From Laetmonice hystrix (lineage: Eukaryota), in the NCBI GenBank assembly GCA_965235115.1, contig OZ249442.1, positions 11,594,001 to 11,658,000 on the forward strand: a stretch of 64,000 nt of DNA, in the 5' to 3' direction. Both the position numbers and the translations under genes were made by a program. Positions 4,257-55,000 of the stretch are shown here, piece after piece; position 1 is the stretch's first letter, and each line of letters opens with the position of its first letter. Under the pieces are notes generated by a model. It was not told where the DNA came from. It worked only from the letters and a program-made list of their open reading frames with translations, and made no database searches.

Positions 4257-7200
4257 ATGATGAGGATGACGATGATGATGTTGGTGCTGGTGGTAGCCAT
4301 GGTTACCTGTGAACTTGCTTCCGCCGACCCTGACACCCAGACGCCTCTCTTGAAAAGGCTGCTAGAACTCCTCAAAGAGAAGAAAGCCAGTGGTAGGTCA
4401 CAATTAAACATCCACCTGTTTATAGAGTATTCATATGTAGTGTGGGGGGGGGGGGGGGTCCAGGAACCCCGCCCGCCTCCTTTGAATAAATTACTTATTG
4501 AGGACATTTTTGGTAAAAAAAAAAAGGAGGTGTAAAATGCATTATTTTAACCAAAGGAAACCTTCATATTTCCACTTTTTACCACTTACCACTTAGTGAC
4601 GTCATTAACTCGTTATTACGACTTAATGACGTCACTAAGTGGTAATTTCGAGATCACCACAATTTTTTTCTCTGAACGCGATTAACTCGAAATTACCACT
4701 TAGTGACGTCATTAAGTCGTAATAACGAGTTAATGGCGTCACTAAGTGGTAATTTCGAGATCACCACAATTTTTTTTCTCTTTATGTCGCCAACAGGGCT
4801 CCGTATATAAGGACACAATAATATAATGCTGTTTTTATTATGATATTTGAATTATTGCACACTCCTATCTCGACCTAAGCACATCTAAGCTCAGCTTTTC
4901 TCCAACGACTTTCAGAGGTCCCTGTCCATAGCAACCCATCACCAATCCTGGAAAATGTCAAGAAAACAGAAATTGGAGAGCTTGTATCCGAACAAGGTAA
5001 ATCAGGGCATGCATGGATTATAAAATATTCTAATCTTGTTTTCGCCGGGAAGATGACCTCAGATATACCGACACTCACAGTGACTCACTCATTCAACTTT
5101 TCTCTTTCCGGACATTCTGAAAGTTACGGGGTTACATCTGATGCCCGTGCATCTGAAGAAAATCACACAATTAGCCAGTGTCCTGCAGGATGACCTTAAC
5201 ATAATAGTGGAGTGTTAACGTGGGTAACATCACTATTGCGATATTTTCGTTTTTACTTTTTATTGCTGAGTCCCAACAACATGCAAAATATACTACAACA
5301 AAATGTACATCCGATTTAAACTTTTTTTTCAGAACTTTCAGCTAAAGCGGATGAAGATCTGGAAAAAAGAGGTAATTTTTTTTATAAGCACCGACTGCAA
5401 TCGTTTCATCAACAACATGACATCTCAGGATAACAATGTCATGATGTATGCAATTGTTCTTTACAGACCTTGGAGAATTGGAGAAATCGACCAAACCAGA
5501 CGAGGATTCGGTAAGCGTCCTGCTAAGGGGGTTGCTGGACATAATGGAGGAAAGGGAATTAGGTTAGTGAAGCGTTTTTTGATGGTTAAAATATGAACAA
5601 AGAATCATGATAATAAAATATACAAACTGAAACTTGTGGGAAGAAAAGGATGGAAAGGTAGGGGCGGATCCAGGATATTGCAGCTGGGGGTGAGGGTGGT
5701 GATGTATGTATAAAACCTCAGGTGGGCCGTATAGACACACTCTGGGGGACTAAAGCCCCCAAAGCCTCCCCCTGGATCCACCACCGGTAGGTTCTAGTGA
5801 ACTGCTCTTTGATGGTTTACATTGCAATACAATATATACAAACTGACTCTGCAGGAAGAAGAGGATGGGCAGAGAAAGTTGAATGGGAGGTTGATGGTTA
5901 AAGCATAGAGAAACAATTGTTATATACAGTAAACAACCCGAAGAAGAGAAATAACGGATACTAACTAAATGTGAATTTCCACTGAATGTGGCGCCTTTAA
6001 TCAAATTTATTCGGCTCTTTCTTTAACGTTTCAATCTGCACTCTCTGCCATCTCTCTACTCATGCAAGACTCTCGATACCGCGGCCGTCAAACTACCACA
6101 GTATAATTTACCTATACCGTACCAGTTTTCCATGTTAACTAGTACATATTAAACCACATGTTGTAAACGTCTGGACCGGAGTTATTTAGTGCAGGTTTAA
6201 TGTGTTCACACTCTAATGAAGCAAGCCGTCTAGAGCCACCACAGTTTTCCGTTGCGTGACTACGAATCCAGACATTGCGTTTCATGCACTTAACATTAAA
6301 AGGAGGTCATTGGTACTCAACAACCTGATACAACACGACCTTTGGCTGTAGCCTCTTGAGTATAAAAGACAAAACACCCGTGTGCGAAAATTATATTTTA
6401 CTATGGATAAGCATGATACGGTGGCTGATTTAGGACACCGAAAACATTCTACTTATCTGGAGATCCTTTCCCGTTATCTCGAGATCTTTTCTCGTCATCA
6501 TGGGATTTTTACCTTTTTAAAATCAGAAACACTTACAAGTTTTTTCTATCAAAATACATAATATTGATATGTCATGGGTTTGACTTAGTGTAGCAGATTA
6601 CGTTAAAGGTCATACAGGTGCTTTGGTGGATATTGTCAGCAAGTATGATGGCCACAAAGATTTTTGTTTAGCTCCAACTGGAAGCGTACCATAAAATGAC
6701 GTCATGAATATTCCGTATTCATGTCATGCCAGCGTTATGGGACTTTATCTTAAGACAATGATAAAAGATCTCATGATAACGCGAAAAAATCTCATGATAA
6801 TGAGATAAGATCTCGTGATAACGAGATAAGATCAGGGAAAGATCTCGTTTCCCGGTGTCTCGTACTGTTCAGCATACTGTGAACGATGGACAAAAGCCAT
6901 TCAATCCTTTATTTTCGCAGGGAAGCGTGGCATGCAAGCGATGCGGTACGACCCTAAGAAACGACAGCTGACCATCTACTTCCAGGTTTGTGTGAAGGGA
7001 GACAGAGGTCGGAAAAAGTGCAGGAAGGCATCCACAGGCCACTACTGGGAGATCGAGGAGTATGACGGCTCGAACTGTGTCGTGTCGGTGAGCATACAAT
7101 CTCCCACATCGTACCTATTCGTCCTGTAATCGGCTTGATTCCGTAGGCATTGGCCCAACCAGCAGAAAAAACCTCGTTGAACCAAGATGACAAACCCCGT

Positions 7201-8733
7201 CAAACCTTGAAAACAAAATCAGGTCATCGATGACGCGACTCTAACCCAAATAGATCTACACGTTTCAAGGGCGCAAAATGTAATTTATAGAAAATATATT
7301 CCTATAAGTTCTTGAGGCACGGGTGCATGACATGAGGCCTCGTTTTCGGGAATAGATGGAAAAGCTCTCACGCTTTTCAAGATCCTCGAATGGTTTCAGA
7401 TAACCAGAAATATCTGTTGTGTCTTTTTCCTTTTAATCCAGATAATCCATGATCTCCAAGTCGTACGACTCTTCAGTTCAGTTATATTCCCCATGTTGCG
7501 TAACAATGGATCATGACTCAATGGTGGCTTGAGCGATATTTTCTGAAGACGGAGGGCCTAACTGTTCTTCCCCTGGAATGCTACAAATAAATGTAGACCC
7601 GAACCTTGATGTAACAAAAGCGTTGGGCTATCATAAACCGCTGTCTCTTTGGGCATCTCTATTCAATTTTCCTTCTATTCAGATAAGACGAGGGAGTGTA
7701 CCCAAGTATATGGTGATTGACGAGAATGGAGGCAGAGGCCCCCTGGAAGTAATCCATGTGGACTTTGATCCAAAGATGCGCTACAAGGTCCGGGCCTGTG
7801 AGGTCATAGAAGCTGGTGGTAAGGAGGGATTGACACGCTGCAACGTAGCTTTGTACAAGGGACCAAACAGACCCTTCCTACCCAAAACAGGTGGGTATAA
7901 AATTTCAGGTTTGCTTCAGACTATCTAAGAATGTGCAGTTGCATTTAGCTTCTTCCTTATCTCTGGCTTGAGGTCGTTTCCTGTATAACGTTGATCAGAA
8001 TCAGTGCCCTTAAGAAGCATCAGAAAAAAGAAACACATTTTCTGAGACTAAGATCAATCAACGACAGTATAAAGTATGAACTATAAAATACACTATATGT
8101 AAAATAAATATGTTCTCTTTCAGATCTGAAGTACCCCGCATTGATGGACAGAGCAAAGGGTAATCCCAATGAGATCGTCCGAGAAATTGTTCAAGGCAAG
8201 AAACCAATATTTTCTGGGTGAGGGGCGCCAGTGCCCTGTCCTTTTATCTCTAGTATATCCACGAAGGCATAGAGTTGTAGATCGGATGGATAAAAAAAAG
8301 TCCCCAACTTTAAGCTCCAATATATCAAAAACTACATCACAAACTTGAAGTTGGGGACTTTTTTTAAAATCCATCCGATATATGTGTAAAAGTCGGCACT
8401 GTTTGCGGATAAAATCGAAAACGTTCTGTTGTTACTCTTTCTATACCTGTTGGAAACTGAAAAAAAACAAAGGGTCCGTGGCGTACTGATCAACACAACT
8501 CCTTCCATAACTATATTTTTTTGCCTTAAAAAACATATTTCCGCCTCGTCCCGCCAAACCTTGTTTCCATGGTTCTGATCGGGATTTAAAAGCAGTTAGA
8601 TGGAGTTAAGTTGATTTGGATCGCCATGAGTAGATCTTGCATATAATCTCCTTTCTTTTTTTCAGGTGCCAAATGCCGTTTTGGTAAGGACAAGGGCAAC
8701 ATGCTTCAGAACGCGAAATCAGTGGGAATCTAG
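4257..8733 (+). CDS. Secreted prepro-protein A, uncharacterised family (204 aa predicted)
   Basis: Exons 4257-4392, 6921-7087, 7683-7890, 8124-8159, 8666-8733; all GT-AG, phases 1,0,1,1; frame closes at TAG. Hydrophobic signal peptide, pro-helix LLKRLLELLKEKKAS, GKR site, 6 Cys in the mature part. Exons 2 and 3 have the same lengths (167, 208 nt) as paralog B. The last two exons are less certain: exon 4 could read through to TGA at 8219-8221. Confidence 0.85.
4588..4806. mobile_element. Compound palindromic (cruciform-prone) repeat in gene A intron 1
   Basis: Two mutually inverted copies of accacttagtgacgtcattaa...ttaatgacgtcactaagtggt; TGACGTCA at 4597, 4627 and 4704. Confidence 0.7.
6433..6862. 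mobile_element. Inverted-repeat element built of ctcgt/ataacgagat-type subrepeats
   Basis: Left end ggacaccgaaaac...ttatctcgagatc is inverted relative to right end gatctcgtgataacgagat...gtttcccggtgtc. Confidence 0.5.
8281..8379. mobile_element. 99-bp miniature Tc1/mariner-type MITE related to the element at 26666-27518
   Basis: About 30-bp TIRs atcggatggataaaaaaaagtccccaactt / aagttggggactttttttaaaatccatccgat. Confidence 0.7.
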
Positions 8734-11151
8734 GATTCCCCATCTTTGTTCTGAATCTAAACCACACAATACTTTCGCAGAGTTTAATTTTGGCAGTCTT
8801 TGCTTGTACATTGTACTCTCACTGGTGTTGGAGAATCACTGGTCGTGACCTTTGTTTTGGACCTCCATTCCATTGTCCAGAACAAAGATCTGTCATACCT
8901 AGCTTTTGTAACTCGGTGTTTAACAGTTGATCCATAAAGTCAGTATCTAAAGTAAGTAAATAGTGTTGGTTCAACTTACATCAGGAATATTAGTATGTTT
9001 AATTAGAAGAAACCTGTGCAGCGGAAAGTTTCAATGGTGCACACCGCGGTTCGTGGGGAACGGGAAAGGGCGATTTGCAGCATAATTATTGTTGAATTGT
9101 TATTTAGTTAATTATTATTGTATCTACTGCATTTCTTTCAGAACTAGGCCAATTTAGGCCGAAAACTCCTTTCACCTTTATAAGGTTACGGTGACCCCTA
9201 AACATAATATTAAGAACTTTTAATTGAGTTCCATAAAGTGCACTGCCATATTTAACAGACATACTAGTCATGTAATTGTCAACCCTGCCACAAAATTCGA
9301 TCATCACACTTTCATTGGCTTTGGGGGATATTTAAATGTGCCACATAATTTGTGCAATCTATTTAAGCTTTAGTCACACGTATATTTTTCCGACATATAC
9401 TTTTCTAACATATCTCACTATGCTAAGTACGATAACAACAAAAGTGTTTATTAGAAATCATGTTTTGCATATCAATAAAACATCATATCGTTTTAAGATT
9501 TGTTTTATATTTCTTTAAGGATGATATTATATATTTGAGCTTTGAAACGTTTAGTTTCGGTTCACTGCTGTGTTTGAAAAGTTGTCATGTTTAGGATTAC
9601 AGGTAAAGTCTTGTCCAACGGCCACTTTTCTTTCCACATGCATGTTTCCCGCCGCGAGTCTAAGAATAGAAACATTTCCCCTCACAAAAGCGTCAAACGA
9701 TGCACGACGTGATATGATAACGTCACCCTGTCTGTAGCCTTCTCTCACGTGAGATCGGCGCCCAGGGACAAACTTAAGACGCCCCCCCCCCATTGCCAAC
9801 TTGATTTTTTTTTAAATTGTTACGGCTATATGTTTGCCCCTATCCCTTTGCGCCCAGGGGCAAATGCCCCCTGCCCCCTCACTACGCTATACAGCTCCTG
9901 AGCTGCGGTTGTCCTAAGAGAAGGGGGTCAGGAAAACCGGTCCTTGACGGGCTGGGGAAGTCGACCCGGACGGTGATGTGTCAAACCTGGCAGGTTGAAT
10001 ACTTATCATGCCCATTGTCATCATGGCCCATTTATGTCAATGGTAGACTTGAGTCGGGAGTGAATCTTGACATCAGAACGCCACTCTATAGATCTACGGC
10101 AACGCTGCGAGAGACTGGTACATCTAGATGTCGTGACCGACAGACGGAATTTAAGATAGTGGGGTTCTGGAGTCGGAAATATAATCAGACACCGACATAA
10201 CATATTGGATCCTATTATGTACAGTGGGGATCCAGGATTTTGATAAGGGGGGGGGGAGTACCTAAAAAATCTTTTAGCATCGCTACGCTCGACATGATTT
10301 GATTGTGACTATATATACTACACAAACACAAATACACACACAAAATAATTGCTATTCCCACACAGGTCTACAGTGTACTGACCAGTTTTAAAGTCTCAAA
10401 AAATGTCCACAGAAGAATTTGTTTTCAGGAAGCGGTAATGTTATGATATGTTGATTGGAAGATAGATGTGTTGTTATTCAAAAATGGTTAAAAAGGGGAA
10501 AATCTAAGGGGGGCCCGAGCCCCCTGGACCCCCCACTACTATTAGCCTTTAGATCAAAGAGCTTGGGGATTGCATTTATAGGATTGAATAGGGGGGTCTA
10601 TCATTATCATATCCCGAGATACAAACGTGGGTCTCAACTGACCTTGGCTGGAGACCTGCGCCCTCTGGTGGCAGTCTGGTCGCACCGGCCGCACCATCTC
10701 TTACTAGTCTATATCTAATAACTCACGCAGTCTTGTCACCAAATACACAGGAACTGGAAGAAACTCCGCACGAACCTTTCTGTCCATTCGGGTTCAGTCA
10801 ACTGAACCAATTAATCGTTTGTATTTTAATAACAAAGTGTCAATTGCTTCAAAGTAAGCTAGTGATTATTCAACAAATGGAATTCCATCTACAACAGCTT
10901 CACGATAGTAGGACATGGGGGAGGGTGGTTTTGGATTCTTTCGAAGCCCCCTGTTTGAAGAATGGAAAATTACGACCCGCCACCGAAAAAAAGGAATGCA
11001 GAAAATGTCTGAAAGCATAACCATCTGCTTTAGTTTAACCCGTGAAATTAGGGCCATTTCAAAAACCTGTAGATAAAACCAGTATTAAAACCTTGATTCT
11101 GACCTCAAAAAGTAATTTCCGAAATCCTGACATCCCAAAATCCCCACAGCT

Positions 11152-11486
11152 GTACCTAGGGGCTGGAAGCTGAATCTATACCTAGGGGCTGAAACACGGA
11201 AAGCTGAATCTATACCTAGGGGCTGAAACAGGGGAAGCTGAATCTATACCTAGGGGCTGAAACAGGGGAAGCTGAATCTATCCCTAGGGGCTGAAACACG
11301 GGAAGCTGAATCTATACCTAGGGGCTGAAACACGGGAAGCTGAATCTATACCTAGGGGCTGAAACAGGGGAAGCTGAATCTATCCCTAGGGGCTGAAACA
11401 CGGGAAGCTGAATCTATACCTAGGGGCTGAAACAGGGGAAGCTGAATCTATCCCTAGGGGCTGAAACACGGGAAGCTGAATGTATC
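11152..11486. repeat. 34-bp minisatellite, about 9-10 copies
   Basis: Unit aagctgaatctatacctaggggctgaaacacggg. Confidence 0.95.
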
Positions 11487-13527
11487 CAAATTTTCAGATA
11501 CATTTTTAGGAAGTTCGCTACCGTACGGATACACAGAAAGGACACACAGTGCATATTTCGTCTGAAGTTATAACTGCATCTGTTTGGCCTCACCCCCCCC
11601 CCTTGCACCCTACCCCCTCCTTCACTCCCTCCCCCCCCCCCCCGACACACACACCCTCTTTCCCGTCGCCGGCTTGATGTCTATTCTTCTGTTGACGGCG
11701 GTCTGTCGGCATGCTCTGGTTCCCCAACCATTAATCACCAAGGTCAACTCTGTGTCCCTACACCTTCCATTACATCTGTGTCGTCTTTGTCCCCCTTTTT
11801 ACAAGTAAGGCGCACATATTACATATTGATTACATGCTCCATATAATTGTGAGAACTATAAACACACTTATTATGATAGACAATGCATAGTTACTCCTGG
11901 AACAACACAGTGACCCAGGTAGTGTAGCTGATTGGAGCGCGGTAAAAACGACTTCGACGTTTTACACTTCATCTGTTGCCATCAGGGAAACTCGCTTTAT
12001 CAGTGGCTAATTTGATCGTGGGGGTGGGGGTGGAACACCCCCCCCCCCCCTTGGAATTCACATAATCTACTGAGGCCTCGTTTGGGTATTTCATTCAAGG
12101 CATTGTCTGTTCTAGGATCTGTGCAATAAAACACTGTCCATTATCATCTCCACTTTATCCGGGATACCATACGGTATGAGTATTTGCTGTCTGGTTCGTC
12201 AGGAAAATAAAGTGGGCAGTTCGGGGTATTCCCCATGATGGGGTTAATATAACTTTGGACCAGGAAAAATAATAGATTTTTACTTTTTAGGGCCAATTTT
12301 ACATGTTATAACGGAGAATCCATCGCCGCTTGCAATCGACCCGACATTATAAGCCTATTTCCCTGTGTGTACACCCGACAAAAATATTGCAACATGCACT
12401 CTTTAGAAGTGCTCGGTATGTATGGTCATACTCGTTGGTATAGTCTAGCTTTGTGCAGTCCTGTCGTGTCTTGTCAGAACTTATTAGAATTGTCTGTTCA
12501 CACCTGTAGATCTTGTATTGTATCGTTCATGTGTATTGATACTCTCTATGTATGCATGCATATATAAATGGAAAAGAAAAAATACTTTTAAAAAACCAAC
12601 AACCTACTTGGGGTGAGCAATAACCGCTTTTTTATTTTTTTTATTTTTTGTTTGTGTGTGTGTGTGTGTGTTTTTTTTTATGTTTTTTTTTTATCGCCAG
12701 TATGTTGTAGATAGGGCCAATAGTTAGGTATTATGTATACATATGTATGTTATATTAATCCAACCTGATGGTTGCTAATAAAAACTTATCTTATCTTATC
12801 TTATCTTATCTATCTTATCGTAATCTGTGTAACTTTTCCAGATACACCGATTTCAACATGTGGCGGAACAGTAAGGGCTGGCTCCTTGTAATACGCCGTC
12901 TAGTTGCTTCGCATTGTATTTATCGGGTCTCACTCAAAAGCAAAGCAATTAGTACAGTTGTATCAAAAGTTAAACAGATACCACCTCCCTTGTTTGATAA
13001 ATTCGTTTCTCTGGATATCTCCCTCACGAGTCGCCCCTCGTGTCTCTCCCTTTTCCTCTGATTTCGCCGTGAAGATGATATTACCGACACGGCCCACACT
13101 CACTCATATTCTCACACTGCCCGTGTCACATAAAGTCATGTCCCCATATAGAGGTCAATGAATCCCGTCTCAGAGTGCCTACGTGATCTCGGCCTACTTT
13201 TAAAACATTTGCTTCTCCTCCGACATATTGTGACGACCCGGCCTCGTCGTGTTTGCGTCACGGATGGGTTACCGTATCTTGTCCGCATTCCTTAAAATCT
13301 CAACTTTACCGATAAAAGCCTTGTTTACGACCAAATTTGTTCTTGTTTTTGTACCTCGTGATGCACAGAATGACTGTATCACCACCTCAGTTTAAGAAAA
13401 TTGAAGAAAAAAAACCTTTCGATCTTATTTTGTTCCTAGACGACTATATTTAAAAGCAATGGAAAGGCAACGACAGACATGTCCGGTTTTGTTAAGCAGT
13501 CACCTGTGTCTTCCGCCCGCCCCTGTC

Positions 13528-13611
13528 TATAAAAGGCTAAACCCAACCAACCTGACCACTTGAGATCCGGGGAACAGTAGCGCGTGCACCGTCTTCAGTT
13601 AATCTCGCAAG
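13528..13611 (+). promoter_or_regulatory. TATA box and non-coding first exon of secreted gene B
   Basis: TATAAAAG at 13528-13535; strong donor AAG|GTAAGT after 13611; acceptor tttcaacag at 14123, 18 nt before the ATG. Confidence 0.6.
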
Positions 13612-14140
13612 GTAAGTCGCATTACAAGCACACCCTGGTCGACATTTTTGTGGGAGTATTAAGTGTAGGAGGCCATGGGAAGATATGCCACAGTTTGGAA
13701 AACTTTGGAAAACATTTAGGTTTGAAAAAGTTGGTACAACTCTAAGCTGGTGTAGATTTCTAACTAACGGCTTATTTATCTCTCTCAGCCTTATCTCTCC
13801 GACGGACATCCTTATAGCATTTATCGAATTTACTACGGTAACGTTTAATGACTGAGTACAATTTCTATAAGTAGCATGCATACTCAAAAAGTGAGGAGGA
13901 GAGTTCAGCGAGGTTGAAAGATGCCTTGCCAAGATGGGAAGTAAATTGAATTTGGGAAAGAATTTGCTGCGGCATGTTATACTTTAACTTCGAAGTGTGA
14001 TAACCGGTATCTTCTTTCACATGCAACAAAAAGTGAAATGTTATAACTTAACACATGTTGCTGTCAGTGTGAAATGTTCATTCTAATTTTTGATAGAAAA
14101 TGTGTTCTCTTCAATTTCAACAGAGCAGACGCCGTTGACA

Positions 14141-17100
14141 ATGAGGACCTACGTGTGGCTAGTGGTGGCCATGGTTGCCATCGTTACTGTGGCAGCAGAA
14201 CCGAACGCCGATCTCCTCAAACGGTTGGTGAACGCCCTCGAGGTGAAGGATGCAGGTGAGTGTTTCATTGGTCGACAGGCCCGCATGATAATAGCATTTC
14301 ATCGAAACAACACGCCAGAACGGACGCGCAATATCTTTGCTGTACTACTTTATCTCTGTGACAGCCTTATCTCTACAACGGACAACCTTATCTCTGTGAC
14401 CGACAGCCTTATCTCTCCGACGGACAACCTTATCTTTGTGACCGACAGCTTTATCTCTCCGACCGACTACTGACAGCCTTATCTCTCCGACGGACAACCT
14501 TATCTTTGTGACCGACAGCCTTATCTCTCCGACGGGAAACCTTATCTCTGTGACCGACAGCCTTATCTCTCCGACGGGAAACCTTATCTCTGTGGCCGAT
14601 AGCCTTATCTCTCCGACGGACAACCTATCTCTGTGGCCGACAGCCTTATCTCTCCGACGGACAACCTTATCTCTGTGACCGACAGCCTTATCTCTCCGAC
14701 GGACAACTCTATCTCTGTGACCGACAGCCTGATCTCTCCGACGGACAACCTTATCTCTGTGACTGACAGCCTGATCTCTCCGACGGACAACCTTATCTCT
14801 GTGACTGACAGCCTTTTCACGCTGACCGAGAGCCTTAGCTCTTTAACAAATAGCTTTATGAAATGCCATGTGCCCTCAACCATACAGCATGTGAGTGTGA
14901 CGTCTGTTGCACATTGTTCCGTTGCCTTTCCTCATGAATTCCCAGGGACAGTTTTTGCTTCCGTCAAAACTCGAACATGGTGGTAAAAAACGTTATCTTG
15001 CCGCTTGCATCGATAACAGTCGTTATCCTTACCAGAAAGCTTTTAATAGCTTGTATTAGAAGACTTTAGGGAGAGGTCTTTCAGGAGGAACGTATAGGAC
15101 CAACACGTCCCTTGTGGGATGTGATGCAACAAGCTATTTGACCTTTGTCACCTTGTTTTCATATCAAACACTTACAAACGACATATATAAAAATACATGC
15201 ACTATAGGGACAGGAAACTATGTGGCTAAAAATACCCGCCATATTAGCGTCAGTTGACTGCTACGAGCCCTGACCCTTTTCAGTACTGAACGAACTCGTC
15301 CGAGAGTGAAAAATTCAAGACCATTCACAAATACGGGAATAGGGTATGAGCATTAGAGAAATTAAATGAAGAGAAAGGAAAAGTTAAAGTAGTAGAATGG
15401 AGTATAGGTAGAAATTAAAGCTTTATAGTCATGGTTTTTTCTTGGAGAGGGGTGGGTGGGCGAGGGGAGGTTAGACTTTAGACTTAAGACGCCAAGTCCT
15501 GCTGTGTCAGATACGGTTCTGTGTGCCCGTCGGCGTCAGCTCGGTCATGGTGGAGTGGGTACTGACTGTATCAACAAGTCGAGGACAGTTTGGGGTCACA
15601 TCACCCACCGCACAATGATCAAATTATACATGCACGCATGACGGACCACTCATCACGCGGTCTGTACATCCACATGGCCCTGCCGTAGTCAACCGTCACA
15701 CCGGTAATATTCGGTGTACGTGCAGGGCTGCATGATGGTGGGGGTGGTGGTGGGGGTGGTGGTGGTGGTGGGGGTCATGGAGAGGGTGGGGTGAAGTGGG
15801 GTGAGGTGGTCGGGGGTGATTCTCACGGGGTGGATATTAACAGAATCTTTACACATGCCCTGTGAGTGTAACTTACCTGGATTAACAGGATCTTTACACA
15901 TGCCCTGTGAGTGTAACTTACCTGGATATTAACAGGATCTTTACACATGCCCTGTGAGTGTAACTTACCTGGATATTAACAGGATCTTTACACATGCCCT
16001 GTGAGTGTAACTTACCTGGATATTAACAAGATCTTTACACATGCCATGATATTGGTTCTATCCGAAAGTATCTCTAAAGCTTTCATAATATTTTATCTAC
16101 CTAAGATTGGTCCAAAATGGACAATTCAAATAGAAGATAGAACTAAAAAAAAATACATAAAAAAGAGAGAAAGTAGGAAATACAACAACCAAGGGCATTG
16201 CCTTAAAAACGTGTTACATTAATAGCACATAAAATTAGGTATACCTTGGGTGTCCAAAACTTTTGAGAGCGGTATTAGAGTCGCGCTCCCACCGCGCGAT
16301 CTTTTTTTTTACAGTCAGCCGAAAATTTGAGTTCGCCGGATATCTTTGTACGAGTCATGTTCGGTCGGTTGATTATCGCCCTGTACTTGGACTCTCCCAC
16401 TGTACGATTATCGCCCTGTACTTGGACTCTCCCACTGTACGATTATCGCCCTATACTTGGACTCCCCCACTGTATGATTATCGCCCTATACTTGGACTTT
16501 CCCACTGTACGATTATCGCCCTGTACTTGGACTCTCCCACTGTACGATTATCGCCCTATACTTGGACTTTCCCACTCTACGATTATCGCCCTATACTTGA
16601 ACTTTCCCACTATACGATTATCGCCCTGTACTTGGACTCTCCCACTGTACGATTATCGCCCTATACTTGGACTTTCCCACTGTACGATTATCGCCCTGTA
16701 CTTGGACTTTCCCACTGTACGATTATCGCCCTGTACTTGGACTCTCCCACTGTACGATTATCGCCCTATACTTGGACTTTCCCACTGTACGATTATCGCC
16801 CTATACTTGGACTTTCCCACTGTACGATTATCGCCCTGTACTTGGACTCTCCCACTGTACGATTATCGCCCTATACTTGGACTTTCCCACTGTACGATTA
16901 TCGCCCTGTACTTGGACTCTCCCACTGTACGATTATCGCCCTATACTTGGACTTTCCCACTGTACGATTATCGCCCTATACTTGGACTCCCCCACTGTAC
17001 GATTATCGCCCTATACTTGTACTCCCCCACTGTACGATTATCGCCCTATACTTGGACTCTCCCACTGTACGATTATCGCCCTATACTTGGACTCTCCCAC

Positions 17101-19587
17101 TGTACGATATGCGCGTTAATTTCGGTCATTTTGATCAGATATGGTGGAGATATGTAATGTGGACGGCGGGCTATACGGGAGGGGGGTGTATTGGCGGACT
17201 TGTGAGTGTTTTCATGTCTACGTGTAGAAAGTTCACAAAATTATGTTTTTATCATTTCCAATGAACGTCAGGTTTGCCCGACAGGCGGGTAGCAATATGA
17301 AACGATACAATATTTAGTCATAAAAATAAAACATGTATTGGGGTTGCGTAATGAACTTTGTGTATATATATAAGAATCAGAATGCAATATAGGATAAATT
17401 TGGGTTGCTGAAAATATAACATATAGGTGCATGCTAACCACGGTCGATTCCTGTGTTTGTAGGCCTATAAGGCTATATGTGCCTTATATAGCCTCATGCC
17501 TTCTTTACATAACAGGATGGGATACTAGTCCCATAGCTACATCATATTGCCCTCCAGAACTATCTCACTTGAAGACTCCCATTACATGTATATTGATACC
17601 CACGAGTAGAACGGGTCAACTGTTATTGCGCCATCCCGTGATAGGCCTAGTCGAATGAATCGTGCTCGGACCCAGGAAATTTACACCTGTGTGCTATAGG
17701 ACAAATAACTCTTGTTTTGACCCGGAGGCCCCCTCCATGTATGCAACCAGACGAATTGTCTTGTGAATTGCACCCGGAGTCAGGATTCTCTGCATACCAT
17801 GACACCACCAACACTAAACTGTTTTGCCCTCAGAGAAACGGAGCATGCAGCTGATGAAGTACGACGCCGGCACAGGGAATCTGAAGATCCAGTTCCAGGT
17901 TTGCGTTCAGGGAGATCGCAGTAAACAACCCTGCCGTCCCGGTATTCAAGGCCATTACTGGGAGATCGTCGAGCTGAACAAGGACGGATCCGTCTCCATG
18001 GTGAGTGTGACGCCGGTGTCGCGGTCTCATCTTTCCGCCGGTGTCCCGGTCTCATTTTTCCCCCGGTGTCGCGGTCTCATCTTTCCGCCGGTGTCGCGGT
18101 CTCATCTTTCCGCCGGTGTCGCGGTCTCATCTTTCCGCCGGTGTCGCGGTCTCATCTTTTCGCCGGTGTCGCGGTCTCATCTATCCGTCGGTGTCCCGGT
18201 CTCATCTTTCCGCCAGTGTCGCGGTCTCATCTTTCCGCCGGTGTCGCGGTCTCATCTTTCCGCCGGTGTCGCGGTCTCATCTTTCCGTCGCTGTCCCGGT
18301 CTCGTCTTTCCGCCGGTGTCCTGGTCTCATCTTTCCTACTGTTAGGACGCTGCATCTGAGTATATTAAGTGTGTGTGTCGCCGTTTGGGCTTCACCACTC
18401 GGCAGACATACAGACTTCAGTCAAACTTCTGGGAACTTGGACCGCGGAGAAATGACACCGTGACACATGCAGGTCGTAGATTATACACGTTGCGTTTTAT
18501 AGACCCGACACGTCTATCATGCAATATCGTGTGATATCGGGTCGGCTCGTGTCGCAACGTATAAGCTCTCACATTAATCATATCTATTAATTCTACAAGA
18601 AAACTAATGGGAATTATTGAAATATGCCTATACGTAGGAAATGTTGTATTTAGAACGTTTACCATAATCTCAAAGTTATTTAATGAGTATTTCTTTTCTG
18701 GAGTCTTGTACAAAAAGTAAGATATAAATTTCCAGAATGTATCTCTTTTCAGATCAAATCCGGCAAAACGACGAAATATATGGTGGTGGACCCTACCCTG
18801 GGGGGCCAAGGTTTCTCTGAGGTCATCAATGCCAACTTTGACCCCAAGAAAAGATACAGGGTGACAGCGTGCGAAGCTCCTAAGCTCGGCCAGGGTTACG
18901 ATAAATGTAACATGGTCGAGTTTGTCGCTGGACGGAGCGGTACCTTCTTCCCGACTAGTGGTAAGAAACAACGTCAGGCCTAATGTCCATACCACACTGA
19001 CAACGTCAAGCCTAATGTCCATACCACACCAACAATTGTTGCGGACCTAGTGGTGAGCTGACCCCGCGCGGCGCGCGGGCCAGTCCCATCACTAGATCCG
19101 GGTGCTGGCCCTTGTGGTGCGCTGGCCCGCGTGGTGCGCACCACCAGGGCAGCCCTAGTGAAGGGAGGTGCGACTCCGCTCTAACTTGCCCATTCCAGTA
19201 AATATGTTTCAGCTGTATCTTCCCTAGCACTCATTAGGGGAAGCAAAGGTAATTGTACATATAGTTGGAACATTCCAACACGTTTAACTTCAATTTCAGG
19301 ACCTCTTTTCCACATGCTTCATGTGTAAAGTCCTATGCAGCACCAGGGCCAGCCATCACTAGGGCCAGCACCCGGACCTAGTGGTGGGCTGGCCCTAGTG
19401 CAGGTGCCTGCAGGTGCAGGTGTATAAAATAGTGCATTCTGGGTCAATTTGAGGGGTTGAAACGTTTTGAAAGAGGATTACATTTCGATTACATTTTCAA
19501 AGTTTCCATCTGGTGATATATGTTTCTCTCGCCCTCTTTTTTTCTCCAGCAAAAGCGCGCCCAAGTGGAGGAAATAACGCCGTCTAG
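14141..19587 (+). CDS. Secreted prepro-protein B, paralog of A (175 aa predicted)
   Basis: Exons 14141-14255, 17834-18000, 18753-18960, 19550-19587; GT-AG, phases 1,0,1; ends TAG TAA TGA. Signal peptide, LLKRLVNALEVKDAEKR pro-region, 4 Cys. Shares FQVCVxGDR, GHYWEI, KYMV, FDPKxRYxVxACE and CN motifs with A. Confidence 0.87.
14349..14815. repeat. 42-bp minisatellite (2x21-bp subunits), about 11 copies, gene B intron 1
   Basis: Unit ccttatctctgtgaccgacagccttatctctccgacggacaa; a lone partial copy lies near 13790-13810. Confidence 0.95.
15832..16045. repeat. 47-bp minisatellite, about 4.5 copies
   Basis: Unit ggatattaacaggatctttacacatgccctgtgagtgtaacttacct. Confidence 0.95.
16371..17107. repeat. 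35-bp minisatellite, about 21 copies
   Basis: Unit gattatcgccctatacttggactctcccactgtac; source of the spurious 333/276/150-aa ORFs. Confidence 0.97.
18011..18335. repeat. 25-bp minisatellite, about 13 copies, starting 10 nt after the gene B exon 2 donor
   Basis: Unit cgccggtgtcgcggtctcatctttc. Confidence 0.95.
19042..19402. mobile_element. GC-rich inverted-repeat element in gene B intron 3
   Basis: ggccagtcccatcactagatccgggtgctggcc (about 19078) is the reverse complement of ggccagcacccggacctagtggtgggctggcc (about 19362). Confidence 0.55.
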
Positions 19588-20215
19588 TAATGAGGGTCAT
19601 TCCGTGAACACCATGGACTTAACCCTGCAAGATCTGCTTCCATCGCCACCTTGTTGCTACGAAGGAATACCATGTTTCGTCGAGATATGACTTGTCTGCC
19701 GTGAGCTATCTTTGGCAAACTGCCAGGAGGGAGTTGACAAATGACGAGTTACGTAAAACGATGACTCGACAGAAACAATTATGAAAATGGGGCAACAAAA
19801 ACAGAGCATGGATTACGTGATATTGATTAATTAAATTAACTTGATTGCTATCAGAGGTTACGATGAAATCTAAACAGACTTTCTGATCATTTTGACGAAC
19901 TGTTTACAGATTGGATCAGTGTACTTGTATTGGCATTGTAAACGAGTTCTGAAAGATTAAAACGAGACAAGAAGTCCCGAAATACAAGACATTAAACAGT
20001 GTTCTATTGTCTCTGTTTTTCTTCTTAACCAAACTACCATCCTTTATAGCCTCTTAGAATTTATTCGGGGGTGCGGATGGGGGGGGGGGGGGGGTGCCAT
20101 CTTCTTGTTTTACCAAAACTGTCTTTTTATGGAGCATTTTATTATGACTTAGAATTTGCAAAGACTAAAGTGAGGCATGTAGGAGCGCCAGTCGTCTACG
20201 AATAGAGTCTACGGC

Positions 20216-20793
20216 ACACGCCTTATCCAGACCGCCGCCAGAATATCATCACTCTGAATCAGAGAGACTATAGGCTGATCTCTGAAAGAGGGAGATTCTA
20301 AGACGAATACGGAACACACCTTACCCAGGCCGCCGCCAGGACATCACCACTCTGAATCAGAGAAACTATAGGCTGATCTCTGAAAGAGGGAGATTCTAGG
20401 ACGAATACAGAACACACCTTACCCAGGCCGCCGCCAGGACATCACCACTCTGAATCAGAGAAACTATAGGCTGATCTCTGAAAGAGGGAGATTCTAGGAC
20501 GAATACAGAACACACCTTACCCAGGCCGCCGCCAGGACATCACCACTCTGAATCAGAGAGACTATAGGCTGATCTCTGAAAGAGGGAGATTCTAGGACGA
20601 ATACAGAACACACCTTGCCCAGGCCCCCACCAGAACATCGTCACTCTGAATCAGAGAGACTAGGCTGATCTCTGAAAGAGGAGGATTCTAGGACGAATAC
20701 GGAACAAACCTTACCCAGGCCGCCGCCAGAACATCATCACTCTGAATCAGAGACACTATAGAATCTAGGCTGATCTCTGAAAGAGGGAGATTC
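20216..20793. repeat. 98-bp tandem repeat, about 6 copies
   Basis: Unit recurs at 98-bp spacing (acatcaccactctgaatcag at 20341, 20439, 20537). Confidence 0.95.
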
Positions 20794-20927
20794 TCGGATG
20801 CGTGATCGCATAGTTGTGAGGAGTGTTTTTCTGACAGATTTCGAGACATCGTTCATTTATCAAATATAGTGTTCCCCGTCTTCCTGTGTATCACTCAGTG
20901 GTCCCCAACCTTTTTCGTGTGGTCCCT

Positions 20928-35125: not shown

Positions 35126-39928
<4,803 letters not shown>

Positions 39929-44026: not shown

Positions 44027-47000
44027 TCATTGAAACCCTTCGAAAGGGAGTGCTACCTGTTCAAAGAGATCTTCACCACCAGAGGGCAGCAGTGTCATGT
44101 TTAAGTTCAGTCCACTTGTATTTGAATCAAACTGTTGTCGCCGACCGTGGCTTGATGCCCTCCTTGGGCCATCAGGTTCTCTTTCCCTCTCCATCAATTT
44201 CTCCACCTCACTCGTCGAAAGGTGGTCAACCTCTAATTTGTGCACATTTTTTAGGTGATGTCGGAGAACGCAGGGAAAGCGTGCAAAGTAATTACAAAGC
44301 CGACACCAGTGTCCCCTTCCTTCGTCTTCGAGGCGATGGTAGCGAAGATGTTTGGAGAAGTAATCCTTCACCAGTGTCGTAAAGTTACACTTGGGGCAAT
44401 CTAGACGCTTTGCTGACGCCGCGTCCACATGCGCTCGTCTCATATGGCCTCGGAGGTGTTCTGTGTCAAAGTTATGACAGCAACAGTTCATTGGCAACGT
44501 GATTATGAAGGCCCAACATTATTTATCTATTTCCAAACTGACTAAAGATGACTTTAAATAGCAAACACAAGGAGTAATAAGATTTCACATGGTTTTAGAT
44601 AGGTCCCAGTCCCATAGCACAAAACAATTTAGAAAGTACAATTATCACTAATTTGAATCAAGTCATGAAAAGCCACTACAAGCACTTTTATAGCAGTCAC
44701 AGTTCTATCATCTATGCAGGCACGAAGCTTTATTCTGGGTTGGCAAAATTGCAAGTCGTTTTCTCAACTGAGTTGCATAAATGATTATGAGATCGTTATG
44801 GTTGGCACATCTGGTAGACCTCTGAAGTGAGAGAGATAAGCCGGTACCATACCTTCCGCCTTGTAGCCACGTCCACAGATCTCACAGGTTACATTGATTC
44901 CCTCCTCGTGAGACATCTTGTGACGCCTCATCAGTCCCTTACCCAGGCTCTTGTAATCACACTTGTCACAGTAAAGTGGTTTATTCTTGGAGATGTTTAT
45001 GTCGTGGGACATAAACATATGTCTATTTAAATCATTTCTGTAAAAAGAAAAGGGTGAGTTGACATTAATCATGTGTTTCTTTGGTACCTTTTTTTTGGTT
45101 ATATTTCTACATTGAAATTACCCTTAACAAAGAAAGTTCAACCAGCAGAAACTTTGATGAAATTTTCTGTTTCCCTTTTTTACAATCAACAATGGATAGC
45201 AATTAAACAATGAATAGCAGATAGGTCTAAGCTAATAAGCACAATAATTAGAAGATAAAAAAATATGGCATACCTTCGGCGGAATTGAAGAGAACAGATA
45301 GAACAGAGATGAGGTTTTTCATCAGTGTGGGTCATCCTGATGTGCTGTTTGAGATTATTTTTATGGTACGGAAGATCATCCAGAAAAGTCTTCCCACATA
45401 TTGGGCAGTTGGTCGTCTTTCTCTCCTTTGGGGGTCCATGCATGAATCGAATGTGATTTTCAAGACTTTTTGCAAGCAGTACCTTTCCACATTGTGGACA
45501 TGAACAAGGGCCTTTCGGCTTTTCAAACCGGGTTAGCCTAACTCTGTGCTTCATCCTAGCATGCAGGTAGACGTCGAGTGGGCTGTATGTCATGTAGACA
45601 CAGCGGCTACAGTGGTAGCGAGGGATGAATGTTGGTGCCACCCACTGATGGTGCATGACCTGGTGTTGTATGACCTTTCCAATGACCATTAATAGCTGCA
45701 GCTCCTGCTGCTGGTCACTCTGACACCTGACCTTGGAGCCACATGTACACTTGGTACAAGTCATGTTCCACACGCCAGCCTCTGGCTGCTGAGCATGGTC
45801 TGCATCCTGGACGTGACGGGCAAAGTCTCCCAAACTGCTACACTTGTAAGGGTTTGACTGACAGAATGGGCAATGAGAGGGCACGTCGCTGCGGAACCTT
45901 CGGTTCAAATCAATGGAAGTAGATATGTTCTGGGTGTCGGAGTCATCATACACATCAAAGGCAAATACATTCAGGTCCTCGACAGACATGGTACAACCGC
46001 TACTGAATACCGACACAGAGGGGTTTGATTTTGGCTTTGTAATTGTAGCAGGAACCCGGTGTGATTTCTGAGGAGCCTTTCGGTATCCTTTCCAACTAGG
46101 CTGAACGTTATGGAAATGTCGCCTAACAGCTGCTGGGATGTTAGATGGCCCAAGTCTGGGACTAGGTTTCTGGGATAGATTCCTACTAGTCAGATGGGTC
46201 TGAGGTCTTGCTAATGGAACTGGTGCCTTCGTGTTTTGCCTTCTTGGAGATTTAATATCCTTTGGTTTTCCTTTCTGACCAACTTCATTCTGTGGACTCC
46301 AGTCAGGATCACTTTTATCCGAATTGTCATCTGTTTTATCATCATCATCATCATCATCGTCGTTGTTGTCGTCATCTTCCCCATCAAACTCTATATCACT
46401 GCCATCTATATAGTCATTAAGTTCATCGTCCTCCTCACCATCATCCTCATCAAGGTCAATATCAATATAATGAATGTCATCGTCAGAGTCATCATCACCA
46501 GTATCATCATCATCCATATCATCTTCTTGGACATCTTCATAAAAAAACTCTTCCAGATCATCACCATAGTCTATATCATCATCATCATCATCATCATCAT
46601 CGTCGTCGTCGTCATACAATACAAGGGAACTGTCTTGTTTTTCACCCTTTATATCTGTCATCTGACAATCTTTCTGTACGGAGCCACCTTCAGAACTCGG
46701 GCCTTCTCCTGTCAAACTCATCCTAATACCAGGTTCCTTTTTAATATTGGCATTCTGTGAATGTTCTGACGGGTCTGTGGTGCTTTGTTCTTGTGTATCC
46801 GTATGTATCATCTCTTCGAGGGTCAACAGATGTTCACTGCCACGCTGATCATCCACGGGAAGTACAACAATGGATGTCACCCTAGGAGAGGCATATCAGA
46901 TATCAATGATTATTTATTATACCTAAATATGGAACAAGAGAATGAACTGTGGATTTCATCAATAAAACAGGTCCTTTTGTCAATACACATTAAAGGTACG

Positions 47001-52023: not shown

Positions 52024-55000
52024 ATGGAATCGCAAACTAACTTAGAGGGTGATCCAGGAAATTGCTCAGATGAATCAAAAGATTCAACTCTCAAAGAGTC
52101 TAGCTGTGAGGGATTAGGTTCTTCCCCTGCAGCAGCAACCGGTGGTTTGACCAGTTCTCATCCATTGAGTCCTGACGTAATTGTTAAACTCAAACCAAAA
52201 ATAGATGACAACAGTAACATTCAAAACCTGAAAGGTAGTTCCCAAGGGGACTGGAGACGAAACAGTACTGCAAGTGAGAAAAGTTCTACAGGTACATCAA
52301 CAGACCATGGCGGGGATTCTGATCAGGCTGAGGCATGCAGTGGGTCTGAGAAGTCTTCCTCCTCAAAAAGAACAAAATCTCCCGCTGGAAGCAGGCATTC
52401 AGATTCTAGTAAGGATCTCATAGGCACACCCAAGCCACAGTCTCGCTCGCCCAGTCCTGCCTTGGACATTGCTGAACATTTATCTCTCGATGGTGTTTTG
52501 CCACAAATGACGAGCACACCACTTGGAACGACCCGTCCATCGTCACACGAAGGGGTTCTCTCCGCCGCCCCATCACTGGGACAGAAAGCAGACAGGCCCC
52601 AGTCTCTGTTTCCGCCCGATACACGACGTGAGCTTGATACAAGTGCTAATGCTGAGGATGTTGACACCTCTCTCCTTAGTCAGTGTAGTACCCACACAGC
52701 TTCACACGAGTCACAAACTGACCTGGACTTGTATGATCAGGTGCAGGTACCAATCATTGGTTATGAGACCATGGAGCAACGTTCCCGCTTTACGGTGAGT
52801 CCTTTTACATGGATGAATCTATAGATTTGAAGGGAAAATATACAACATAATTTTTGCCTGTTTGCATAAGTCATGATACACGTCACAATAAATTAGTGTT
52901 AAGATATTTTTTCTTTTCAGCTAATAAGAGTTTTTATACCTCAGTTAACTTTAGTTTATATTGAAGGTTTAACAAATGGAAAGACATAAAAAATTATTCA
53001 CTTAAGTAAAGTTCATAAATATATACTAAAAGATTAGTAATCTGAGGTTTCTTATTGTATCAAATTGTTCAGACTCAAAGTCAAAGAGTGGCTGATTATA
53101 ACATGTCACAATACTGATAATGTTAAGAATCAACTGTTGTTTTTAAGTCGATACAGAAAGATGCAACACGAACATAGATCATTCATAACAGAAGTTAGTC
53201 ATGCATACTCGGTCTTACTTGGTCACCACTTTTTTTTATTTCTTGCTGGGGGTTGCCACTAGAGGGTGGCAGAAGACATGATTGGCTGGTTTCATGGGGC
53301 TCATTAAGCTAACAATACTTGGAAACCCCTATTGCCTGCATTGTATGTTTTACCTGATCCCAGTAAAATCCCGTGGGAGGTGCTGTTAGCGTCTCCTCAG
53401 TGTTTAATACCTTGAGGAATAGGAATGGCCACAATGGGCCAGCTCATGCATTGTCTGTCCTTGCCTGGATGTATGACAATGAATGTGGTCTCTTCTGGAA
53501 CCAATCTGGGAGTGTTATGCTCTAGGTGTATGACTCACTGAGGTAGGTATTACTAGGACCTGAGACCTGAGATTTATACAGTGTTCAGGCAGTGGTTGGC
53601 AGCCTCCCAGCATCGACACATCTCTACTTATTGTGTCTTGTCATCATGTACTTCTAGGTCGGCTGTATAAAGAGAGGTGTGTCCTCTCGAGCATGTTTTT
53701 TTCAGCTTATGGAATGTGCTTTGGTTCTTTCAGTGGTGAGTTTTGTATAATAAGACCGTTGCCAGGGAATGGAGAAAAACATAAGATTACAATATTAGGT
53801 ATATTTAATTTTTAGGGAGCTCTCTTCAGTCTAGATCATAACCTAAACTTCTGATGCTTTCTTAAGTACTCTGACCCAAATATTGAATGACAGACAGTAG
53901 ACCCATGTACAGTACATATGTTTTTAAAATGTATGGGAGATCTGATTGCAAGGACAGGTATTGATAGCCATAGGGGTGTGCATACTGAGTGCAAGATGAT
54001 AAAATAAATCATGTGTTATACTGCAGGGGTCGGAGGATGTTGGACAATGCCACTTGCCCACGGGACTAGTGACCATGCAGGTTGCACTAGTCCCTAGAAA
54101 TTTCTGCTAGTCCCAACACATTTATGAATTCTATAACTAAAATTGGATTTATTTATGACTCTGCATGTAGTAGGCCTAATAATAAAGAACTGAAAAATAC
54201 CATCATGGCATGGATTTCTCCTTTAAGTTGCATTCATTTTTTCAAAGCACAGTCAAACCTCGTTCCGGGTACAATTAGAGCTCTAAGTTGGTTTAAATCG
54301 CCTGACGGGCGATTACCCATTGGCTCAGTACTGGTCCTGACGTCGGCGAGCGGGCGAGTGGATCTCGCGACCCCTGATACTGATTACTGAGTATGTCAAT
54401 AACATTTGATAGTGTCATCACGTCAGGTCAGAAGATCTATGGTTCTGTCATCATCATGGCCATCACACCCCATGATAATTATAATGCCACTGTGACATTG
54501 ACAGGTGACAACATCTGTAGCCATGGATAGGTATAGATGTGGTAATGTAGGATGGGTATAGATGTGATAATGTACATGGGATAGACGTGTATAGATGTGG
54601 TAATGTAGGATGGGTATAGATGTGATAATGTAGGATGGGTATAGATGTGGTAATGTAGGATGGGTATAGATGTGGTAATGTAGGATGGGTATAGATGTGA
54701 TAATGTAGGATGGGTATAGATGTGGTAATGTAGGATGGGTATAGATGTGGTAATGTAGGATGGGTATAGATGTGGTAATGTAGGATGGGTATAGATGTGG
54801 TAATGTAGGATAGGTATAGATGTGGTAATGTAGGATAGGTATAGATGTGGTAATGTAGGATAGGTAAAGATGTGGTAATGTAGATGTGGTAATGTAGGAT
54901 AGGTATAGATGTAGCAATGTAGTCCTGTTAACGTTAGAAATAAAGGCATCAATACTTGTCACTTCAATGACACCTGAAGCTTGTGATCTTGAGCAGTAAA

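Follow-up and report, generated by a model that had tools for sequence, protein, structure and literature searches.

The 64,000-nt stretch of DNA analysed here (the window) contains two neighbouring, intact, spliced genes on the + strand, gene A (4257-8733) and gene B (14141-19587), and the analysis of their sequences indicates that they are two real protein-coding genes that arose by tandem duplication and belong to a lineage-restricted family; we regard their gene models and the constraint acting on them as established. A tandem pair at these positions had been proposed in the initial annotation, and its presence is confirmed. On balance, the products of both genes are best read as lineage-restricted, convertase-processed secreted binding or defence proteins. 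If confirmed, they would represent an unannotated, lineage-restricted secreted family that is revealed only by a splice-aware reading of the DNA. Secreted families of this kind are often the home of taxon-specific immunity, venom or signalling innovations; the practical value of the present one is modest at this stage and depends on the source organism, the expression site and the fold of the A and B products.

The coding part of gene A exon 1 (4257-4392) is supported by its similarity to exon 1 of gene B (46% amino acid identity, E 0.003, tblastn within the window), and that of gene B exon 1 (14141-14255) by the same similarity and by its splice site. Exons 2 (6921-7087 in gene A and 17834-18000 in gene B) and exons 3 (7683-7890 and 18753-18960, respectively) are supported by tblastn, MAFFT and splice sites, and the end of gene B exon 3 coincides also with the end of similarity to a third homolog, P0001, described below. 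Our exon models reproduce the identical lengths of exon 2 (167 nt) and exon 3 (208 nt) and the identical phases that had been claimed for the two genes, the intron phases being 1/0/1 in both. All splice sites are canonical, with GT donors and with AG acceptors behind pyrimidine tracts. The donors of exons 1, 2 and 3 (phases 1, 0 and 1; the slash marks the exon end) are GTG/GTAGGT, TCG/GTGAGC and CAG/GTGGGT in gene A, and CAG/GTGAGT, ATG/GTGAGT and GTG/GTAAGA in gene B, and that of exon 3 is conserved. Exons 2 and 3 form a core unit of 375 nt, with phase-1 introns on both sides and one phase-0 intron inside. A 25-bp minisatellite starts 11 nt past the exon 2 donor of gene B. An ORF of 201 aa that is antisense to gene B exon 3 (18417-19022) has no Pfam match and no counterpart at gene A, and was rejected as a chance ORF.

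Comparison of the two genes by tblastn within the window revealed 54-56% identity of exon 2 (E about 1e-16) and 44% identity of exon 3 (E about 2e-13), and no third copy of the gene in the window. In MAFFT alignments, the two exons 2 are 49% and the two exons 3 are 46% identical; over the 122 aligned codons of the core, the identity is 47.5%. The identity at the first, second and third codon positions of the core is 0.61, 0.63 and 0.41, respectively, and pN of 0.37 with pS of 0.74, the latter saturated, leads to a dN/dS of about 0.16. Introns 1, introns 2 and the 1-kb regions upstream of the genes gave no blastn match between A and B. The restriction of the similarity to exons, the strongest divergence at third codon positions and the low dN/dS together indicate constrained coding genes. 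The earlier description of the pair as old and constrained is supported.

The N-termini of both products are signal-peptide-like, in agreement with the signal peptide proposed earlier. Their hydrophobic 12-mers have KD values of 2.8-3.0 and are followed by small residues at positions -3 and -1; the predicted signal peptide is of about 23 aa in A (4257-4325), ending ASA/D, and of about 19 aa in B (14141-14197), ending VAA/E. The predicted secretion of both products is well supported. The signal peptides are followed by conserved pro-segments of 22-25 aa, which contain the LLKRL motif and end with Lys-Arg at the junction of exons 1 and 2. The initial annotation had described the LLKRL segment as an amphipathic helix, but its hydrophobic moment (0.34-0.35) is no better than that of shuffled sequences (p about 0.28-0.30). 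Exon 2 of gene A opens with a split Gly codon followed by Lys-Arg (6923-6928), and exon 2 of gene B opens with Lys-Arg (17836-17841); the residue preceding this pair is Gly in A (GKR) and Glu in B (EKR). The Lys-Arg pair that had been noticed after the pro-segment is conserved at the start of exon 2 in both genes and is followed in both by [GS]MQxM[KR]YD. Since further KR and KK pairs occur inside the mature domain, the KR alone is no proof of cleavage, and the cleavage after it is put forward here as a putative step.

Exons 2 and 3 together account for the core, which is about 122 aa long. In gene A, exon 2 encodes its first half, with Cys 21, Cys 31, the HYWEI motif and a Cys 50 that is specific to A, and exon 3 encodes the second half, with KYMV, EVI, FDPKxRYxVxAC and the second pair of cysteines; exons 2 and 3 of gene B encode the respective halves of its core. 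The motifs LxIxFQV, HYWEI, KYMV, EVI and FDPKxRYxVxAC, as well as the four cysteines, all of which had been listed as common to A and B, correspond to invariant columns of the MAFFT alignment. Within each pair (21/31 and 92/106), a short distance of 10 and 12-14 residues, respectively, separates the two cysteines. The mature domain comprises 134-144 aa. The strongly cationic character ascribed earlier to mature A is reflected in its net charge of +14, and mature B is cationic as well (+6.5). No N-glycosylation sequons are present in the A or B protein. AF2 models of the half-domains encoded by exon 2 and exon 3 of gene A contain strands only and no helices. They may weakly suggest an all-beta core, weakly because of their low confidence (pLDDT 48.5 and 46, respectively).

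A search of Pfam, NCBIfam and PHROGs with the separate exon peptides of A and B gave nothing above noise, and a search of PDB sequences with single exons and exon profiles gave nothing significant; the only echo of an FN3/Ig-like sandwich consists of non-significant matches of only 14 residues to antibody light chains (E 0.14-0.22). Homolog searches with those ORFs of the window in which exon 3 of A or exon 2 of B is located provided no candidate, and no relatives were confirmed among metagenome contigs, searched with the profiles of both exons, or among viral contigs. The conserved motifs brought up chance matches or nothing in the literature, and the window was also scanned for Rfam families and tRNAs, with no match. 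When 1.84 billion representative proteins were scanned exhaustively in HMMER with the exon 3 profile, a single relative emerged, P0001, an 84-aa exon-3-like fragment from the ENA assembly ERZ26222911. It is 43-46% identical to exon 3 of A and of B up to the position of the exon-3 donor, where the similarity breaks off. P0001 retains both exon-3 cysteines; the Pro of FDPK is missing from it. The only relative of a zinc-finger gene that neighbours the pair is also found in ERZ26222911. This coincidence indicates that the lineage is barely sampled, and that the absence of a known family is weaker evidence than it appears. The earlier statement that no family can be recognized holds with respect to sequence (Pfam, NCBIfam, PHROGs, PDB), but the novelty that it implied has to be discounted, as the lineage is almost absent from databases. 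The orphan status of A and B largely reflects this poor sampling.

Results of our analysis can be combined into the following tentative scheme. The prepro-protein would enter the ER, where the signal peptide is removed, and each of the cysteine pairs 21/31 and 92/106 may hold together a beta-hairpin in what would be an all-beta domain resembling a sandwich. A Kex2/PC1-3-type convertase would cut after KR; the site is not of the furin type, as Arg is missing from P4. The product released outside the cell would be cationic and of 14-16 kDa, and there it might most likely bind a surface or a polyanionic ligand and act as a defence or recognition effector. Such a role is suggested by charge, size, the secretion signal and gene-family behaviour only; tandem duplication, deep divergence and narrow distribution are typical of genes for extracellular defence or recognition. 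It is conceivable, although rather unlikely, that A, B and P0001 are the founders of a protein family that is new, perhaps also in its fold, and whose members are secreted, cationic and processed by a convertase; it would be restricted to an animal lineage with very little sampling and would constitute a new extracellular class of defence or signalling proteins.

As regards the fold, it is possible, though somewhat doubtful, that the core belongs, in a divergent form, to one of the known beta-sandwich superfamilies (FN3-like or Ig-like) and was missed because only half-domains were searched. Many FN3 and I-set Ig modules, as exemplified by the fibronectin and NCAM genes, are phase 1-1 units with one intron, and the 375-nt unit formed by exons 2 and 3 has the same organization; the size class and the strand-only, low-confidence half-domain models are also alike. 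The F-D-P-K-x-R-Y-x-V-x-A segment, present in A and B with a Trp 47 residues upstream, resembles in its unscored pattern the signature of the FN3 E-F loop and F-strand, which we take to be hydrophobic-x-Pro-x-x-x-Tyr-x-hydrophobic-x-Val/Ala plus a Trp in an early strand. Likewise, the Cys21...Trp40...Cys92 spacing is compatible with the Ig triad, and the weak 14-residue light-chain matches point in the same direction. However, neither the peptides of exons 2 and 3 from both genes nor the longer ORFs around them have an fn3, Ig, V-set or I-set match in Pfam (PF00041 included) at E<=10, and the PDB matches are non-significant. The YxC motif of Ig domains is absent, as the Tyr precedes the Cys by 5 residues, the Pro expected in an FN3-type signature is missing from P0001, and the core is long for FN3. 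While Ig domains have a cross-sheet bond, the closeness of the Cys pairs in A and B suggests hairpin staples, and the hydrophobic alternation would place both putative core cysteines on the face opposite to the hydrophobic residues. A beta-trefoil of the FGF/IL-1/ricin-B type, a domain of about 125 aa with a threefold internal pseudo-repeat, was also considered and rejected: alignment of the exon 2 and exon 3 profiles with hhalign gave a probability of 0.6%, column shuffles reach scores as high as the best self-diagonal of the A/B core (15.8; p 0.46), and the exon pieces have no Pfam match.

With respect to function, both genes might instead encode prohormones or precursors of signalling ligands that pass through a regulated secretory pathway and release the short N-terminal peptide and/or the large domain as signals, which we hold to be unlikely. 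Dibasic KR sites without Arg at P4 are of the PC1/3-PC2 rather than of the furin type, the Gly-Lys-Arg end of the pro-segment of A is a classical signal for cleavage plus amidation, and the pro-segment, with its LLKRL common to A and B, is conserved as much as the core (46% identity). In the order of signal, 22-aa peptide, Gly-Lys-Arg and predicted disulfide domain, as well as in the non-furin dibasic site, gene A is similar to neurophysin-type prohormones. Nevertheless, amidation is not conserved, since B ends with EKR, the large domain is clearly constrained, unlike a spacer, and the Pfam search with the exon pieces provided no match to known hormone or cytokine families. In contrast to the 14-Cys fold of neurophysin, the domain of A and B has 4-6 cysteines and a strand-rich prediction, and there is neither a sequence match nor a Cys ring in the N-terminal peptide. 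Still less probable are venom or toxin-type secreted effectors, although many cnidarian and molluscan toxins have the signal-propeptide-KR-mature layout, and the genes, tandem, fast-diverging and lineage-restricted, with cationic and predicted disulfide-bonded products, resemble the genes of prepro-toxin and antimicrobial precursors. The match of A exon 1 to Pfam Conotoxin (PF02950) is below the threshold (14 bits vs. the cutoff of 25.1, E 0.1) and concerns profile positions 1-41, i.e., signal and pro-region composition only; exon 1 of B has no such match. Pfam and PDB sequence searches with the exon pieces yielded no toxin family for the mature domain, which is far larger and poorer in cysteines than toxin and antimicrobial peptides. 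That exon 1 lies outside the gene, and that translation starts at the in-frame Met two codons past KR in both exons 2 (MQxM...) and yields a product of about 120-140 aa that is not secreted, is very improbable: conservation extends upstream from that Met to the KR and the codons before it, which immediately follow good acceptors, a similar exon 1 with a matching phase-1 donor precedes both cores on the same strand at a distance of 2.5-3.6 kb, and four conserved cysteines suit an oxidising, extracellular setting. Finally, we give almost no credence to A and B being chance ORFs or decaying pseudogenes. While the scan of 1.84 billion proteins revealed no annotated or transcript-derived relative, the exon-restricted similarity, the dN/dS value with the most diverged third positions, the open frames and intact splice sites of both genes and the presence of P0001 in another assembly all argue against it.

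The core is followed by a short C-terminal tail, for which the read-through of exon 3 and an additional exon 4 are both candidate ends, tentatively assigned. When exon 3 is read through unspliced, a stop codon is reached after 12 codons in A (at 7928; product of 182 aa) and after 7 codons in B (at 18983). The tentative exon 4 of gene A (8666-8733, + strand) and that of gene B, taken from the initial annotation (19550-19587, + strand), are each preceded by a 14/14 pyrimidine tract plus AG. The former adds 22 codons to the stop, resulting in a product of 192 aa, and brings a sixth cysteine, which makes the Cys count even; the 204 aa given earlier for A could not be reproduced with either end. 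The latter adds 12 codons to the stop, and the previously reported length of B (175 aa) is recovered with this exon. The poly(A) signal nearest to it is located at 19830.

Genes A and B, two neighbours on the + strand (4257-8733 and 14141-19587), are a real, constrained, unannotated gene pair without an assigned family. The stretch in which they lie is eukaryotic in character, with a GC content of ~0.42, numerous minisatellites, and spliced genes. Exon assembly from sequence placed exons 1, 2 and 3 of gene A at 4257-4392, 6921-7087 and 7683-7890, and those of gene B at 14141-14255, 17834-18000 and 18753-18960, all on the + strand. Exon 2 and exon 3 are 167 nt and 208 nt long in both genes and share the phases 1, 0, 1, as the initial annotation had described, while introns 1 and 2 measure 2528 and 595 nt in A and 3578 and 752 nt in B. 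All six donors open with GT (GTAGGT, GTGAGC, GTGGGT, GTGAGT, GTGAGT, and GTAAGA), and all acceptors are AG with a pyrimidine tract in front. It is very probable that both assemblies represent real genes.

The comparison of A and B indicates that their similarity is confined to exons. When each exon peptide was searched against the whole window with tblastn, it matched its reciprocal exon only, with no third copy in the window: exon 2 at 54-56% identity (E ~1e-16), exon 3 at 44% (E ~2e-13), and exon 1 at 46% (E 0.003). Blastn of introns 1 and 2 and of 1 kb upstream did not give any match between the two genes. Over 122 aligned codons, the amino acid identity is 47.5% and the nucleotide identity at the three codon positions is 0.61/0.63/0.41, with pN of 0.37, pS of 0.74 (saturated), and dN/dS of ~0.16. 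Exon-confined similarity, the codon-position pattern, and dN/dS are the signature of an old duplication with purifying selection acting on the protein, and the earlier description of an old, constrained tandem pair holds.

The C-terminal ends are less firmly placed. Exon 3 of both genes closes at a good phase-1 donor in a homologous codon; if this donor is not used, the frame ends after 12 codons in A and after 7 in B. Further downstream, a single acceptor stands out in each gene by its 14/14 pyrimidine tract (8666 in A, 19550 in B); it opens a tentative exon 4 of 22 codons in A (8666-8733, +) and of 12 codons in B (19550-19587, +), each followed by a stop. Both candidate exons open with Ala-Lys-[Cys/Ala]-Arg. 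That of gene A brings a sixth Cys and is mildly favoured by the resulting even Cys count. With the candidate exon 4, the previously proposed length of 175 aa was recovered for B; the 204 aa proposed for A could not be reproduced, as its model gives 192 aa with the candidate exon and 182 aa by read-through.

The precursor anatomy described in the initial annotation proved mostly correct, its statements on processing, fold, and function being interpretations. The N-termini of A and B consist of a basic residue, 12-14 hydrophobic residues (Kyte-Doolittle mean 2.8-3.0), and small residues in positions -3 and -1 (ASA|D and VAA|E, respectively), and from these signal-peptide-like features both proteins are probably secreted. 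A pro-segment of 22-25 residues follows, with LLKRL in common and Lys-Arg (KR) at its end; in A and B alike, exon 2 has the KR codons as its first complete ones. The amphipathic helix ascribed to LLKRL is not distinctive, since its hydrophobic moment (0.34-0.35) was matched by 28-30% of shuffles. In A, the pro-segment is closed by Gly-Lys-Arg (4383-4392/6921-6928), which in peptide precursors is the classical signal for cleavage plus amidation, and in B by Glu-Lys-Arg. Because Arg is absent at P4, neither site is of the furin type; given established convertase specificity, we take both to have the look of Kex2/PC1-3-type dibasic sites. As further KR/KK pairs occur inside the domain, cleavage after the pro-segment KR is a predicted event.

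Behind the KR, both proteins keep [GS]-M-Q-x-M-[KR]-Y-D, and the core encoded by exons 2 and 3 retains the motifs listed originally and the four shared Cys, at positions 21, 31, 92/93, and 105/106 from the first residue behind the KR, with an extra Cys at 50 in A. With the tentative last exons, mature A would comprise 144 aa (pI 9.7, net charge +14) and mature B 134 aa (pI 9.4, net +6.5), so that A is strongly cationic, as had been noted, and B is cationic as well. Mature A and B have no N-glycosylation sequons.

The Cys of the pairs 21/31 and 92/106 are 10 and 12-14 residues apart and strand-like segments flank each pair, which suggests that the two pairs may form disulfides stapling hairpins. 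AlphaFold2 models of the half-domains, built on the available alignments, contained strands only, at low confidence (pLDDT 48.5 for exon 2 and 46.1 for exon 3): strands at residues 4-10 and 15-22 in the former and five short strands in the latter. A beta-trefoil was considered and rejected, since the core has no internal repeat (hhalign probability of exon 2 vs. exon 3 0.6%; self-diagonal test p 0.46). Three features resemble those of FN3- or Ig-like sandwiches and would fit such a fold: a unit of ~125 codons that is spread over two exons with phase 1-1, the F-D-P-K-x-R-Y-x-V-x-A segment, and the Cys...Trp...Cys spacing. However, the YxC motif of Ig domains is missing from the core, and no profile backed FN3 or Ig membership when exon pieces were scanned. 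That the core is a divergent FN3/Ig-like module is a possibility at somewhat below even chance, and it touches the novelty of the proteins, not their function.

As to function, A and B would be made as secreted prepro-proteins, and processing after the KR would set free a binding protein that is cationic, all-beta and stabilised by disulfides. Its likeliest role is that of an extracellular effector in defence or recognition, which we propose tentatively. The non-furin dibasic site and the GKR of A would fit a prohormone or signalling precursor, but the EKR of B speaks against it, and this reading appears unlikely. A toxin-type effector is more doubtful still; the Conotoxin-precursor Pfam match to the signal and pro region of A was sub-threshold (14 bits vs. 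a cutoff of 25.1). It is quite improbable that the proteins are non-secreted and start at the Met behind the KR, and with dN/dS of this order a non-functional locus is hardly credible.

Scans of every exon peptide against Pfam, NCBIfam, and PHROGs gave no match apart from the sub-threshold Conotoxin-precursor one, and PDB searches with single exons and profiles gave no significant one, in keeping with the earlier statement that no family is recognised; antibody light chains appeared at a non-significant E of 0.14-0.22 over 14 residues at the xACEV segment. Word-indexed searches of 5.8 billion clusters yielded no candidate, and scans of metagenome and viral contigs were empty. With the exon 3 profile, an exhaustive HMMER search through 1.84 billion representative proteins brought up a single protein (P0001, E 2.4e-7), an 84-aa ORF fragment on a contig of 288 kb in ENA assembly ERZ26222911. 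It is 46% and 43% identical to exon 3 of A and B, respectively, and keeps both exon 3 Cys. The similarity stops at the exon 3 donor Gly; the two residues behind it, Lys-Cys, may be the translation of a GTAAGT-type donor.

The zinc-finger ORF of the same window (45186-46880, -) has a single relative, P0002 (51% identity), in the 5.8 billion clusters (~15 billion proteins), and it comes from the same assembly; the window's own ORFs are absent from that collection. The lineage behind the window has therefore hardly been sampled or annotated. A lack of close relatives is to be expected and says little, and a lack of distant ones carries meaning only within the reach of a 71-position profile searched against 1.8 billion sequences, where ~41 bits are needed. 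Of the novelty claimed initially, the lack of an assigned family stands, while its extent was inflated by sparse sampling. Called genes beside P0002 carry retrotransposon-type Pfam domains (RVT_1, RNase H, integrase, gag-like), a sign of a Ty3/gypsy-like element in the genome from which P0002 comes.

Minisatellites with periods of 25, 35, 21/42, 34, 47, and 98 bp are dense in and around A and B (18011-18336, 16371-17108, 14360-14842, 11165-11485, 15831-16045, and 20216-20798). The 25-bp array begins 11 nt past the exon 2 donor of B and creates a misleading 173-aa read-through ORF, and the 35-bp array in intron 1 of B creates a 333-aa pseudo-ORF. A 201-aa ATG-started ORF antisense to exon 3 of B (18417-19022, -) was judged a chance ORF, as it has neither a Pfam match nor a counterpart antisense to gene A. 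Outside the pair, 134 consecutive N occupy 2249-2382, as an assembly gap or masked sequence.

The neighbours in the window give no hint of function, and tRNA and Rfam scans of it had no match. A Rab2-type GTPase exon covering P-loop/switch I lies at 37268-37345 (+; PDB Rab-2A E 6e-12, Pfam Ras E 4.8e-5). The C2H2 zinc-finger gene (44027-46880, -), with a 564-aa ORF and downstream zinc-finger exons, carries a long poly-Asp/acidic tract. The Ser-rich 266-aa ORF at 52024-52824 (+), without a Pfam match, may open the coding part of a gene that extends rightward, as its first exon; to the right of it, from ~54 kb on, GC skew is strongly positive.
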